DNA of 64,000 nt from Octopus sinensis (Eukaryota). The position numbers and the translations under genes were made by a program. The notes beneath the pieces are model-generated. The model saw nothing but the letters and a program-made list of their open reading frames with translations, made no database searches and was not told the origin of the DNA. Below, piece by piece: positions 9,313 to 18,763 of the stretch; the first letter of the stretch is position 1; every line of letters starts with the position of its first letter. The stretch is taken from NCBI RefSeq assembly GCF_006345805.1, contig NC_043004.1:74710001-74774000 (forward strand). Reading direction: 5' to 3'.

Positions 9313-9348
9313 TATAAATATCGACGCTAAAGCCTTCCAGAATCAGTT
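9313..9348 (+). promoter_or_regulatory. Core promoter of the galaxin-like gene: TATA box + initiator
   Basis: TATAAATA at 9313-9320. TCAGTT Inr at 9343-9348 (+1 A at 9345, 32 nt from the TATA start), 34 nt upstream of ATG 9379. Confidence 0.75.
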
Positions 9349-9378
9349 CTTGTCCTGGCAATTGTCCAAAAGACGACC

Positions 9379-9427
9379 ATGATGCAAAGAACATTAACCA
9401 TCTTCGCTCTCCTGCTGTTTGTAACAG
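9379..9427 (+). CDS. Galaxin-like gene exon 1 (signal peptide)
   Basis: ACCATG start context, hydrophobic 16-aa core, consensus donor CAG|GTAAGA at 9428. Confidence 0.8.
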
Positions 9428-12400
9428 GTAAGAAAAACTAGACAAACATTTGCATTCCACTTATCTCTTATCTTTCTCATTTGTGTATTTGTTTTGTGAT
9501 GTAGCTATGACTTGGGGGACAGAGAGAATGCTCCTAACGTTGTGGTATTTAGTTAAGGTATTTTATGTTCTTCATTTGATAAGGGCCAAGTCGATGTTAA
9601 CTTTCACTCATCAGTGGGATCGATGATATACAGTCAAGTCAAGTCTTATCCCTTTCCTTAACCTACGAAATCTTGTGCGTATGTTATTAAATTATTATTT
9701 TGTTTGAGTCAGTAAAAGACTCACAATATGACTACCAACAGTCCATTACTTTGTGATCAATTCTCACCGAAATCAATTTTGACTTCTTAAATTTCTGAAT
9801 GATGAAATCACCAACTGAGATTTTATCGAGTTTAACCTTGCACCGATATGCCTAGTCGTGTAATAAATTAACAATCAGTAGCTTGGCAAAGTCAGTGGAA
9901 CGTAAAATACGATCACATGAAATATTTAGTTAATTAGATTCTGCCTTAAACTTTGTTCAGCTAGTAAAATTCGAAGGTAGACGGAAAGAATTTTGGATGC
10001 ATTCATTTCAACTTTTCTTATTAAAATCTGTACTTTTCCTTCAAGTTAGCCTGAAGTTTGACTAAAGAAGACTTCAAAAGTAATTTTTTGGCCACTTTCC
10101 TTGAAAAAGGACAACGTTTCGCATCGTGGTTTTATGAACTAAATGCAGAAAAAGGGTTTAGCCCACAACGGCATTCATGCTGACATGGTTGCTACATGTG
10201 TGGATTATTCTCCAGCTTCATCAACGGTGCAAAAGTGAGTAGCTGAATTTAGGAGGGGAAAGGTGTGCCTTGAAGATAACCAAAGGTCCAGACGTCCTGC
10301 AACTACCACGCCGAAGAAAACATTGATTATGTATGTACACTACATGGTGCAGGATGACACGTTACTGACTATAAATCAAACAGCCAATAGTTTTAGCGTA
10401 TTCCGTGAGAGAGTTGAGTATATTCTGCACAATAACCATGGCATGCTCGGTGCATGCTAGTTTTATCCCGGTGGTCATATTACGAGGAAATCTAACATTT
10501 AGACATATCCAGCTGGCTTCCATAAACGTTTCCTAACCTATGTTAGGTTTTGGCTTCATCACTTTGAACCAGAGACAAAGAGACAATCCATGCAAAGGGA
10601 ACACCCATGCTCACATACCACAAAGAAAGCCAAGGTTGTTTCGTCTGCAGAGAAGATAGTTTCCTCATATTTTCAGAATAGAAAAGGTACTACGTTTATT
10701 GACTATCTTGGAAAGGGTCTCACTGTCAATGGAGAGTATTACGTGATCTTGCTGCAGAAGTTACGAAACGCTACCAAGACCAGACGTCCAGGAACACTGA
10801 AGAAAAGGAGAATAATTTTTTCATCAGAACAATGCTCCAGCACACAAGTCCTTCGTTTCCATGGCTGTTGAGCGTGACTGTGGCTTTGAACCACTTGATC
10901 ACCTCCCAAATCTCAATGATTTGGCCCTATCTGACTATCATCTTTTCCCCGAGTAAAATCTACTTTGCTGGAAATTAGTATTGTAGTGATGATGACGTAA
11001 TGTCTGTTGTTGCAACTAGTTACATTTGAAATCTTCTTGAAGACATCAGTTTATCTGGAAAGACACAGAGCAACTATTAAGAAGAAGGGCAACAATTAAA
11101 GCACGTAAGATTTCACAGCTCTAGCATCTCTCCATCGTAATAATCCTTTGAAATTTTCAGCCCCATCCCCTCATAGTAAATTTGTCCCAGTTGACCAATC
11201 TCTATTGAAATATGTGTGAGTATTTTACTGATTATAGAAACGTATGAATATCCTAAACTTAATTCCTTTCATCTGCTTTTGTATGTGGAAACTTTTATAT
11301 GAAGTAGATATATATTTCACCTGATAGATTTTCATACAGTCTAACACAATAATCACATGAAGTTAAGCATCCTTTAAAAGTCGTTGATAACTATTCTCAC
11401 CAGATTTCTCAGCTGCATAGACGAATCTCCGCTTAAACAAATTTATGCAATCAAACATATGGACACGTGCACATACATATCTGTACGTATACATTCATAT
11501 GCACGTATGTGAAGGTGGGTGTGTGTGTATAATTTTGTCTTAATAAATGCCTGCTGAAAAGTTTACCTTACCTTTTCGATTCATGCCGGCTCATAAGAGC
11601 CGGCGGCTTCCCGGTTTCATAAATATTTTTCAAAAAGTTTTATCAGTGGCCAGCATATTAAAATACCTCTTGAGGTGAAAATTATAAACAATTATAAATA
11701 AGTGTAAATGGAAAATTCTATGCCAGTATTCTGAAAAAATAGACTATAGATTGTCTAACCACATACAATATTTTCCCCTATAAATACAGAAATTTTTAAA
11801 CTTTCATTATCCCTGAATGGGCATAGACTTTTTCGTATAAGCTTATTTATAATTCTTTATAATTTTCACCGTAAAGGTATTTTAATGTGCTGGTCACTGA
11901 TAAAAACTTTTTGAAAAATTTTTGTCCTTATCTTAGAAATAAATATGTATATATATATATATATATATATGCGTGTGTGTGTGTGTGTGTGTGTATACAT
12001 ACATATATATATATATATATATATATATATATATATATATATATATAGAGAGAGAGAGAGAGAGAGAGAGACAGACAGACAGACAGAGAGACAGATAGAC
12101 AGATAGATAGATAGATAGATAGATAGATAGATAGATAGATAGAAATATTTATTTATATATATATAATGCGTTTTATATACATATATATATTAGTATGTAT
12201 ATATATATATATATATATATATATATATATATATATATATATATATATGTATATATATATATATATTTATTTATATATATATATATATATATATATATAT
12301 ATATATATATATATATATATATATATATATATATATATATATATATATACAATTAAAGGGTAGAAATTGATATTAATCAATTAAAACCAGTGGCCTAGCA

Positions 12401-18400: not shown

Positions 18401-18641
18401 AGTGCAGTCTTTTCATCCATGGTATTACTGTTATCCTGGAGGTTTGTATAATTCACTGACTCACCTCTGTTGCAACTACCAAATCGTGGTTAAAGGTCCG
18501 AATAATGCCTGCTGTGGAACAACCCCTATTAATTACCTAACTCAAAGATGTTGTGGATCGCAAGTATACCCAGCGGGTAGTTTAACTAAGTGTTGTTATT
18601 ATGTTCATTGGCCTGGTTATATCCATTATTACTTATGTTAA
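9379..18641 (+). CDS. Two-exon gene, secreted galaxin-like cysteine-rich peptide (96 aa): join(9379..9427,18400..18641)
   Basis: Exon 1 [16 protein letters not shown]+G ends at CAG|GTAAGA (phase 1). Exon 2 follows a polypyrimidine TTTACAG| and completes GCA: [80 protein letters not shown]. Four CC doublets at 13-14 aa spacing. Confidence 0.82.
10100..11000 (+). mobile_element. Degenerate mariner transposase remnant (intronic)
   Basis: IHADMVAT...[47 protein letters not shown]; many stops and frameshifts. Confidence 0.85.
11625..11919. mobile_element. MITE-like fold-back (about 100-bp inverted arms)
   Basis: 11625-11724 is an imperfect reverse complement of 11820-11919. Preceded by the hairpin GCCGGCTC-ATAA-GAGCCGGC (11585-11604). 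Confidence 0.7.
12351..12755. mobile_element. Internally deleted copy of the tail+inverted-repeat (Penelope pLTR-like) element
   Basis: About 85-bp asymmetric end shared with 19244-19335, then inverted arms 12436-12527 / 12665-12755; flanked by (TA)n. Confidence 0.75.
12989..13761 (+). mobile_element. Degenerate Tc1/mariner-superfamily element (maT/DD37D-like transposase C-terminus)
   Basis: VVKS*LERIAA...WQQDS.PCH...LSENFYDF...NYYV...[22 protein letters not shown]. Confidence 0.7.
13762..14166 (+). mobile_element. tRNA-derived SINE (family A), head + 2 bodies
   Basis: Head GGTGAGCTGGCAGAATCG...GAGTTCAAATTCC. The second unit restarts at GTATTTCG right after the AAAGAAATA tail (13994). Confidence 0.85.
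14326..15255. repeat. (CATA)n tetranucleotide tract, about 930 bp
   Basis: Read directly, with CGTA and CAATA variants and a duplicated CATATGCAGATACAGGCATAC motif. Confidence 0.97.
16041..16265 (-). mobile_element. SINE family A, full length, flanked by a 67-bp direct repeat
   Basis: Direct repeats at 15974-16040 and 16269-16336. Confidence 0.9.
16516..16982. repeat. (TATG)n tract
   Basis: Read directly. Confidence 0.95.
16983..17915 (+). mobile_element. 5'-truncated RTE/BovB-like LINE with C-terminal C2H2 fingers
   Basis: [21 protein letters not shown]...[15 protein letters not shown]...[23 protein letters not shown]...KKRYKD, then three C2H2 fingers ending at TAA 17863-17865. Confidence 0.9.
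17917..18185. repeat. (TATG)n tract
   Basis: Read directly. Confidence 0.95.
18400..18641 (+). CDS. Galaxin-like gene exon 2 (mature Cys/Tyr-rich peptide)
   Basis: Acceptor AG at 18398-18399. 10 Cys arranged C, CC x4, C. Stop TAA at 18639-18641. Confidence 0.9.
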
Positions 18642-18718
18642 CAACTGATTCTGGAATTGTCTAAGAATGTAAAGTGTCAATTTTCTCGATACTATCCCAA
18701 TGATTCAATGACACATAT

Positions 18719-18763
18719 AATAAAATTCCTTATGTAAATTATTAATTTTAAAAATGTAATAAA
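18719..18763 (+). terminator. Candidate polyadenylation signals of the galaxin-like gene
   Basis: AATAAA at 18719-18724 and 18758-18763, in an AT-rich 3' UTR. Confidence 0.55.

Follow-up and report, generated by a model that had tools for sequence, protein, structure and literature searches.

What does a small cysteine-rich reading frame encode when its signal-peptide exon lies almost 9 kb upstream of it, and what might the product do for an octopus? The question is raised by a locus within 64,000 nucleotides (nt) of the Octopus sinensis genome (assembly GCF_006345805.1, contig NC_043004.1, positions 74,710,001 to 74,774,000 of the forward strand), the whole of which is referred to here as the window. 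An earlier note, made from the letters alone, had read in it a hidden two-exon gene for a secreted 'mini-galaxin' peptide of 96 amino acids. We consider it very likely that this is a real gene for a secreted galaxin-repeat peptide. Our overall explanation, which we hold at slightly better than even confidence, is that an intact and already annotated gene encodes a secreted peptide with fast-evolving loops, which would act as a binder of changing external targets, with host defence as the first guess at its role.

The two-exon gene model was re-read from the sequence and every element that had been described was present, including the spacing of TATA box and initiator, the 49-nt signal exon, the 8972-nt phase-1 intron, and the in-phase second exon. 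The model is identical to that of NCBI, and its features are as follows (window positions; UTR, untranslated region).

9294..9320, plus strand: promoter motif TTCAATTGTTCACCAAACGTATAAATA, conserved in the family, which holds the TATA box TATAAAT at 9313-9319.
9343..9349, plus strand: initiator-like TCAGTTC, a reading of the sequence; ATCAGTT stays unchanged across paralogues A-C.
9345..9378, plus strand: putative 5′ UTR of 34 nt, containing the conserved GGCAATTG; TGGCAATTG is invariant in three paralogues.
9379..9427, plus strand: coding part of exon 1, 49 nt, with 16 codons and the first base of codon 17, encoding most of the signal peptide.
9428..18399, plus strand: phase-1 intron of 8972 nt, with donor CAG/GTAAGA at 9428 and acceptor TTTACAG/C.
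18400..18641, plus strand: coding part of exon 2, in phase, which completes the signal peptide with (A)VQS and continues through the mature peptide to a TAA stop.
18411..18638, plus strand: coding sequence of the mature mini-galaxin, 76 amino acids, C-x12-CC-x12-CC-x11-CC-x12-CC-x13-C.
18642..18763, plus strand: 3′ UTR to the distal poly(A) signal, with AATAAA at 18719-18724 (proximal) and 18758-18763 (distal).

Transcription would start at the A at 9345, which places the first T of the TATA box at −32, and the start ATG at 9379 carries an A at −3. Near the 3′ end of the intron, a branch-like CTGAT at about 18367 precedes a pyrimidine tract and the acceptor. Splicing of the two exons reproduces the product as first described, with 96 amino acids in the precursor and 76 in the mature peptide that follows AVQS. 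The latter holds 10 cysteines (C, 4xCC, C) separated by spacers of 12, 12, 11, 12, and 13 residues, along with 12 tyrosines, 4 histidines, 2 lysines, and 1 arginine, and it has no aspartate or glutamate at all. As a side observation, CTGGCAATTGTCCAAAAGA in the 5′ UTR (9355-9373) resembles CTGGAATTGTCTAAGAATG in the 3′ UTR (18651-18669); both are kept in paralogue B, and the resemblance is either a shared regulatory element or chance.

Comparison with protein databases settles the identity of the gene. The spliced product is identical over all residues to XP_036361356.1 (P0001; UniRef A0A7E6F0J0), named ‘galaxin-like [Octopus sinensis]’, and exon 1 is the start of that protein. The gene is recorded on CM016866.1 at about 74.72 Mb, with a coding span from start to stop of 9263 nt that corresponds to window positions 9379-18641, and the database record has no other gene called within 10 kb of it. 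The collection stores the longest product of each gene, and therefore no isoform longer than 96 amino acids is annotated. The suggestion that the gene was hidden from annotation thus fails for O. sinensis, where RefSeq and UniProt hold the exact protein under the same name, and as gene discovery there is nothing new here. Word-indexed protein searches, with exon 2 against a collection of 5.8 billion clusters and with the full protein, retrieved only the protein itself.

A profile comparison places the product among galaxin-repeat proteins. Exon 2 alone matches the Pfam family PF24748 (Galaxin_repeat) with 35.3 bits, above the gathering score of 28 (E = 1.3e-8), as the earlier reading of the di-cysteine (CC) repeats had implied. 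Among relatives, P0008 (50.1 bits), P0002 (41.5), and P0052 (68.3) also pass this cutoff, and P0053 lies below it at 22.2 bits. An exhaustive HMMER search through 1.84 billion representatives brought up 96 relatives at E ≤ 1e-3, most of them long proteins with 4-15 matched stretches, including ‘galaxin-like’ proteins of Littorina and uncharacterized proteins of sea urchins. Together, the identity with the RefSeq product, the Pfam match of exon 2, and the recurrence of the promoter, exon 1, splice phase, and 3′ UTR in paralogous loci put the gene model far beyond chance.

The degree of likeness to galaxins needs some care. Galaxins proper have a signal peptide, tandem repeats of about 30 residues that each carry two di-cysteine motifs, and an acidic mature protein of about 300 amino acids that begins after a dibasic site (PMC2726143). 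The octopus product shares the profile score, the regular CC spacing, and an N-terminal signal peptide, the last recognized by heuristics, and like the galaxins of coral skeletal matrix and mollusc shell it would be a secreted protein with two CC motifs per unit of about 27-30 residues. Those proteins, however, have about 290-660 amino acids and many repeats, whereas the octopus mature peptide has 76 amino acids and four CC motifs, equivalent to about two double repeats, with neither a dibasic propeptide site nor an acidic domain. Coral galaxins have an isoelectric point of about 4.5 and belong to a calcified skeleton; the octopus peptide has a net charge of about +2 to +3, and the octopus has no skeleton of the coral type. 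On these grounds it is classed as a galaxin-repeat member in the Pfam sense and not as a galaxin sensu stricto, and its unusual shortness, about a quarter of the usual size, stands as first claimed.

Some side observations concern the wider reach of these repeats. Small secreted mammalian proteins of the IGFL family (PF14653) are likewise about 100 amino acids long, secreted, and marked by several CC motifs. The window protein gave no match to the IGFL profile at E ≤ 10. Residues 27-71 of P0008, the O. bimaculoides paralogue B, gave a sub-threshold match (E = 0.0064; 16.9 bits against a cutoff of 25), and both IGFL and Galaxin_repeat marks are found in one metagenome relative, P0117. There may be a remote link between the two CC families, to judge from these matches. 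A Galaxin_repeat protein of 107 amino acids, HEV7506427.1, is encoded in a metagenome-assembled genome of Thermoanaerobaculia (L004, 6001-6324; L005, 6001-6324), and its repeat (..KGSNNACCGTQPYN..) shares about 40-50% identity with the loops of the octopus peptides. Its neighbours on contigs of 140 kb include a TonB-dependent receptor and a PIN/FitA pair, a genuinely bacterial context, and a further galaxin-repeat cluster, P0003, has 17 metagenome members. Galaxin repeats therefore occur in bacteria, since HEV7506427.1 sits among bacterial genes and the metagenome cluster adds to it.

Closer relatives were found within the genus. A profile search returned five octopus members and two metagenome proteins, none of them a transcript-derived open reading frame (ORF), and by comparison of these proteins and loci the window gene is assigned to lineage A; the octopus family comprises no fewer than four such lineages, A-D.

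Lineage A, O. sinensis: the window gene, 96 amino acids, C-4xCC-C.
Lineage A, O. bimaculoides: A0A0L8FGL5, 134 amino acids, in a model that begins inside the intron; one extra CC loop.
Lineage B, O. bimaculoides: A0A0L8FU16, 94 amino acids, signal MMQRTLIIFTFLLFVAAVQS, C-4xCC-C.
Lineage B, O. vulgaris: CAI9727408.1, 350 amino acids, a chimeric model; the true locus is L002.
Lineage C, O. sinensis: XP_036361078.1 (locus L003), 168 amino acids, ten CC motifs, on the same chromosome as A at 38.5 Mb.
Lineage C, O. vulgaris: P0116 (locus L006), 168 amino acids, on OX597821.1 at 35.9 Mb.
Lineage D, O. bimaculoides: A0A0L8G8N6, 85 amino acids, three CC motifs, histidine-rich.

These short galaxin-like proteins share a signal peptide of the form MMQ[RK]TL[IT]IF..LLFV, a C-(CC)n-C framework, and a W-P motif before the last cysteine, and where DNA was compared they have the same two-exon phase-1 structure and promoter as the window gene. 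They differ from the window protein, as paralogues or orthologues, in charge, in the number of CC motifs (3 to 10), and in their loops, which are 31-63% identical. The window, L002, and L003 all have the promoter motif, a phase-1 signal exon of 46-49 nt, one long intron, an exon 2 with the whole mature peptide, and a conserved 3′ UTR. The introns of the paralogues interrupt the gene at the same place in phase 1 and measure 4179 nt in B and 15212 and 13508 nt in C. An orthologue in another cephalopod, which the earlier note had proposed to look for, exists in A0A0L8FGL5 of O. bimaculoides. A cluster of paralogues, also proposed, was not seen by tblastn: the family is small and dispersed, with A and C 36 Mb apart and no second copy in the 116-kb L002 locus or in the window, where neither tblastn with both exons nor a six-frame search for CC-rich segments turned one up. 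Metagenome sequences, scanned for the signal exon and, separately, for the promoter motif, gave no match in either case.

Two of the existing gene models for this family are faulty. In A0A0L8FGL5, the first 34-38 residues are the translated 3′ end of the intron, matching window positions 18297-18399, and the model lacks the signal exon. The true O. vulgaris B gene in L002 has exon 1 at 10001-10049, an intron of 4179 nt, and exon 2 at 14229-14467, and encodes a complete C-4xCC-C peptide. The model CAI9727408.1 (L002 10001-105956, OX597821.1) combines the signal exon with the first half of exon 2 and leaves at an internal GT, while the intact short ORF runs on to its stop at 14467. Its downstream exons, at 36.7, 83.6, 87.2, and 105.7 kb (22-92 kb away), belong to a membrane protein. 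For lineage A, no O. vulgaris orthologue is annotated. The notion that such genes are easily missed therefore does not apply to O. sinensis, where the gene is annotated, and it does apply to the sister species, with their faulty or missing models.

The family is marked by the contrast between a nearly constant frame and a variable mature region. The window has a single copy of the promoter motif, where chance would give none even with up to 3 mismatches allowed, and each of the octopus loci L001, L002, L003, and L006 likewise has one, 85-88 nt upstream of the ATG. In the alignments A2 and A3, which comprise the window, L002, and L003 (lineages A-C), the motif is invariant (A2). Paralogue C shares with A and B the promoter block TTCAATTGTTCRCCAAAYGYATAAATA, the initiator, and GGCAATTG in the 5′ UTR; it has a phase-1 signal exon of 46 nt with a GTAAGA donor, and several blocks of its 3′ UTR, including the poly(A) region, are like those of A and B. 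The 3′ UTR blocks and the ATGTAATAAAT signal are kept in both B and C. The TATA box and initiator, the tiny first exon, and the splice phase are thus each backed independently by features that recur in paralogous loci.

Between the window gene (A) and the O. vulgaris paralogue B, nucleotide identity is 87.5% from −200 to −1, 88.6% from −70 to −1, 49/49 in exon 1, 82% in the first 300 nt of the intron, and about 70-76% in the 3′ flank. Exon 1 appears to be under purifying selection, because it is identical over all 49 nt to a paralogue whose flanks reach only 82-88%. In blastn comparisons only 18425-18644, the mature coding part, fails to align. A naive global nucleotide alignment of the two mature regions, giving 71% identity with 57 gap columns, was dropped in favour of a protein-guided codon alignment, in which base identity is 51% and 31 of 72 residues are the same (43%), ten of them cysteines. 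The signal differs in 1 of 60 bases, against 49% of bases in the mature part. No ratio of nonsynonymous to synonymous rates (omega) was drawn from this pair, because synonymous sites are saturated (proportion of synonymous differences, pS = 0.75). As these alignments are read, the promoter, signal exon, intron phase, 3′ UTR, and cysteine framework are almost unchanged in lineages A-C, and the loops differ strongly.

The best-controlled comparison is within lineage C, between L003 of O. sinensis and L006 of O. vulgaris, in which the intron of 13-15 kb and the flanks are collinear. Mismatches amount to 162/13627 in noncoding DNA (1.2%) and to 41/447 in the mature coding region (9.2%; Fisher p = 9e-22), and by this measure the loops change at about eight times the rate of the noncoding DNA beside them. 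Of the 29 residue changes none falls in the signal peptide, and 22 of 22 cysteines are kept. The Nei–Gojobori estimates are dN = 0.114 for nonsynonymous and dS = 0.046 for synonymous sites, with omega of about 2.5 (p = 0.048). Within the last 107 nt lie 23 of the 41 mature differences, in runs of adjacent changes in the last loop (about 25660-25719 in L003, about 16955-17015 in L006); when this 3′ cluster is left out, 18 changes in 343 nt remain (5.2%), read by codon as 17 nonsynonymous and 1 synonymous.

Protein comparisons in the other lineages run in the same direction. For lineage A in O. sinensis and O. bimaculoides, 47 of 75 mature residues are identical and one whole repeat or loop of 14 residues differs, while the adjacent translated intron is identical at 32 of 34 positions (p = 4e-4). 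For lineage B in O. bimaculoides and O. vulgaris, 46 of 74 mature residues are identical. Overall, the mature region diverges faster than the signal and the noncoding DNA while the cysteines are kept (A/B and C), and the family is probably a fast-evolving one under positive selection. This mode of evolution, with a near-invariant signal, fixed cysteines, and a fast mature region, is also that of cone-snail venom peptide superfamilies and many invertebrate antimicrobial families. The likeness is one of evolutionary mode only: the octopus family has no sequence homology to them and no propeptide, it consists of a few dispersed two-exon copies, and its role is a prediction.

The features of the precursor are consistent with secretion of a compact scaffold. 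A signal peptide of 20 residues is predicted by heuristics, with an arginine in the n-region, a hydrophobic core with Kyte–Doolittle means of 2.5-3.0 over 9 residues, and cleavage before F21 (V at −3, S at −1); the aligned site LQA/H in paralogue C is compatible only with cleavage at the same position. The secretory signal that had been proposed is thus favoured by heuristics and by its conservation across the family. An AlphaFold2 model from a six-sequence family alignment has a mean predicted local distance difference test score (pLDDT) of 74.3, with 78-87 for residues 21-80. In it, a helix at 3-20, the signal peptide, is followed by five beta-hairpins, one for each loop bounded by cysteines, the last at low confidence. 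We infer that each hairpin would be stapled by a disulfide between its flanking cysteines, the 10 cysteines forming 5 bonds. No significant sequence match in the PDB was found by phmmer and profile search; the best of them, 1c01_A (‘antimicrobial peptide 1’, E = 0.46), was treated as chance, and a Foldseek search of the PDB with the model gave no matches.

Taken together, the explanation that we favour runs as follows. The precursor of 96 amino acids would lose its 20-residue signal peptide after AVQS, giving a secreted peptide of 76 amino acids. This would be the shortest form of the galaxin repeat, with five cysteine-bounded loops of 11-13 residues folded as five consecutive beta-hairpins. 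A rigid disulfide scaffold of this kind, secreted from an epithelium or gland, would carry variable, aromatic-rich loops that bind external targets which themselves change quickly. The TATA promoter, the compact secretory gene, the predicted rigid scaffold, and the putatively selected loops fit a secreted binder or effector directed against such targets.

For the nature of the targets, the closest guide is the squid Euprymna, the one source of functional data on cephalopod galaxins, in which ten secreted galaxins are made in secretory epithelia facing bacteria; their repeat peptides inhibit bacteria, and all are cationic, at +5 to +21.5 (PMC12773714). The EsGal1-10 proteins of Euprymna scolopes, from epithelia of the light organ and the accessory nidamental gland, resemble the octopus proteins as secreted galaxin repeats of a cephalopod in a lineage-expanded family, and single repeats, of about the size of one octopus hairpin loop, suffice for activity in vitro (PMC12773714). 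They differ in having multiple repeats (up to 7) and in being all cationic, whereas octopus mini-forms range from −3.6 to +5.4, and the octopus lacks both symbiotic organs. From this homology we would guess first at a peptide for mucosal host defence, microbe binding, or antimicrobial action, though not at a classical, charge-driven one. Host defence specifically, argued by homology, is a tentative assignment and less likely than not; among the candidate roles it is ranked first together with microbe binding, ahead of a matrix or cuticle role, with saliva or venom and reproduction or signalling sharing third place.

Several observations weigh against parts of this explanation. The sign of the charge flips between lineage A orthologues: the mature window peptide has a net charge of +2.3 at pH 8.1 and +3.3 at pH 7, its O. 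bimaculoides orthologue has −3.6 with 8 Asp/Glu, and lineages B and D lie at about 0 to −1.5. The description ‘cationic’ in the earlier note thus holds for the window peptide, which falls short of the strongly cationic EsGal range, and does not hold for the family. A conserved cationic, charge-driven, membrane-lytic mechanism is unlikely, because charge flips between orthologues while the Euprymna galaxins are all cationic. The selection test at the DNA level covers paralogue C, with the window gene compared at the protein level, and the dense changes that close the mature region of C may stem from a conversion tract or from multi-nucleotide events, rather than from independent substitutions. 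The disulfide pairing comes from inference, not from the coordinates of the model. In a collection of 15 billion proteins, no transcript-derived ORF was found for the protein or its relatives, and six family accessions were absent from the literature searched.

Of the alternatives, the one that survives best is that the peptide is a structural, cross-linkable matrix protein of hardened or chitinous material, for instance in the sucker cuticle, beak, radula, stylet, or egg capsule. Aromatic residues and histidine (Tyr, Trp, Phe, His) account for 20-32% of the mature peptides of lineages A, B, and D. A composition rich in aromatic residues or histidine is common in sclerotized cephalopod tissues. 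Galaxins were, moreover, first defined as proteins of the skeletal organic matrix (PMC2726143), and a galaxin-like shell matrix protein is reported from a bivalve (PMC10045328). Against this, an omega of about 2.5 on a strictly kept cysteine scaffold suggests selection on specific binding surfaces and not on bulk material, neither an acidic nor a low-complexity domain is present in the peptide, repetition in the sequences stops at five loops, and a calcified skeleton is almost absent in octopus. A matrix role is therefore rated as unlikely, and below host defence.

Two further readings are somewhat less likely again, and equally so. The first is a salivary or venom peptide, from a gland-expressed, disulfide-rich superfamily of cone-snail-like build used on prey or predators. 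The conserved signal exon, the invariant cysteine framework, the apparently selected loops, and the compact two-exon unit with its TATA-box promoter are what such a family would have. Yet the peptide has no propeptide region, the small and dispersed family shows no tandem expansion, galaxins go unmentioned in the papers on cephalopod salivary glands and venom found by our search, and a 2026 preprint on cephalopod venom gene families has no such peptide.

The second is a reproductive or chemical-signalling peptide, acting in the egg coat, the oviducal gland, the seminal fluid, or as a waterborne or contact cue, that would evolve quickly through sexual selection or species recognition. Very fast, apparently positively selected divergence between sister species, the gain or loss of a whole repeat between congeners, and a charge that is free to vary all speak for it. 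Such patterns of divergence are typical of gamete-recognition and pheromone proteins. Pfam, PDB-sequence, and HMMER searches, however, found nothing homologous to the pheromones or sperm attractants known from cephalopods.

That exon 2 is part of a longer or differently started protein is very improbable. The protein could be intronless from an ATG at 18297, in a frame that is open from 18282 and with a start that UniProt uses for A0A0L8FGL5, or exon 2 could be spliced onward, as in CAI9727408.1, where the O. vulgaris paralogue is connected with distant exons. In paralogue B, however, the equivalent upstream stretch is frameshifted and ended by a stop, with an insertion of about 230 bp before exon 2, and the signal exon, phase, and promoter are preserved across three paralogues. 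O. vulgaris B retains the whole short ORF, complete in its cysteine framework and matching the 94-residue protein of O. bimaculoides, the downstream exons of the O. vulgaris model are absent from the window, and the longest product on record is the 96-residue one. Least probable of all is a decaying or silent copy, or an annotation artefact without a product: it would account for the missing transcript-derived ORFs in the public assemblies searched, but the ORF, splice sites, TATA box and initiator, and poly(A) signal are all intact, all ten cysteines are kept against orthologue and paralogues, and exon 1 is unchanged amid flanks that are not.

The remaining features of the window are mostly repeats, and the intron is filled with microsatellites, SINE-like (short interspersed nuclear element) repeats, and a decayed mariner copy. 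They are listed below with window positions.

10590-10871 (within about 10060-10980): decayed fragment of a mariner-type transposase, Pfam Transposase_1, E = 1.7e-9.
14325-15255: (CATA)x232 microsatellite.
16517-16984: (ATGT)x118 microsatellite, of opposite polarity to the former.
11939-12349, 12907-12988, and 17916-18181: further intron arrays.
13847-14166 and 16039-16259: SINE-like element of about 177 nt, occurring twice in tandem and also in inverted orientation; copies in L002 are 77-89% identical.
12356-12563 and 19252-19460: direct repeat of about 210 nt with 83-90% identity, 6.9 kb apart, on either side of exon 2.
35181-36410, minus strand: ORF of 408 amino acids with a weak zinc-knuckle match.
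44808-47395, plus strand: retrotransposon of LINE (long interspersed nuclear element) type, with Exo_endo_phos_2 endonuclease and RVT_1 reverse transcriptase ORFs.

The insertion of the mariner copy seems to be older than the A/B duplication, because the 3-kb block around it is collinear with the locus of paralogue B. The two large microsatellites form inverted arms of about 282 nt with 86-88% complementarity, and their opposite polarity accounts for a swing in GC skew from −0.29 to +0.21 between 14 and 18 kb. An Rfam scan of the whole window gave no matches.

Beyond the gene itself, whose annotation was already in place, what is new is the picture of a family, in which a minimal galaxin repeat of five predicted hairpins is kept in several octopus species with frozen regulatory and signal parts and fast loops; our literature search found no paper on these octopus proteins. 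Concrete annotation errors are also flagged in O. bimaculoides and O. vulgaris. A wider reading, which is at present doubtful, is that these genes form an octopus-specific superfamily of minimal galaxins, single-domain hairpin peptides stapled by disulfides, with a fixed frame and loops under strong diversifying selection, that serves as a fast-adapting repertoire of secreted recognition or effector peptides in defence, venom, or mate and egg recognition. If that were true, the superfamily would have been overlooked so far because the gene models are wrong in two of three genomes, and it would be the cephalopod counterpart of the conserved-signal, hypervariable peptide superfamilies of cone snails and invertebrate immunity. 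If the peptides are expressed in skin, gland, or reproductive secretions, they would offer a compact model, accessible to synthesis, for the function of a single galaxin unit, for the unsolved galaxin fold, and for the diversification of secreted effectors in cephalopods.

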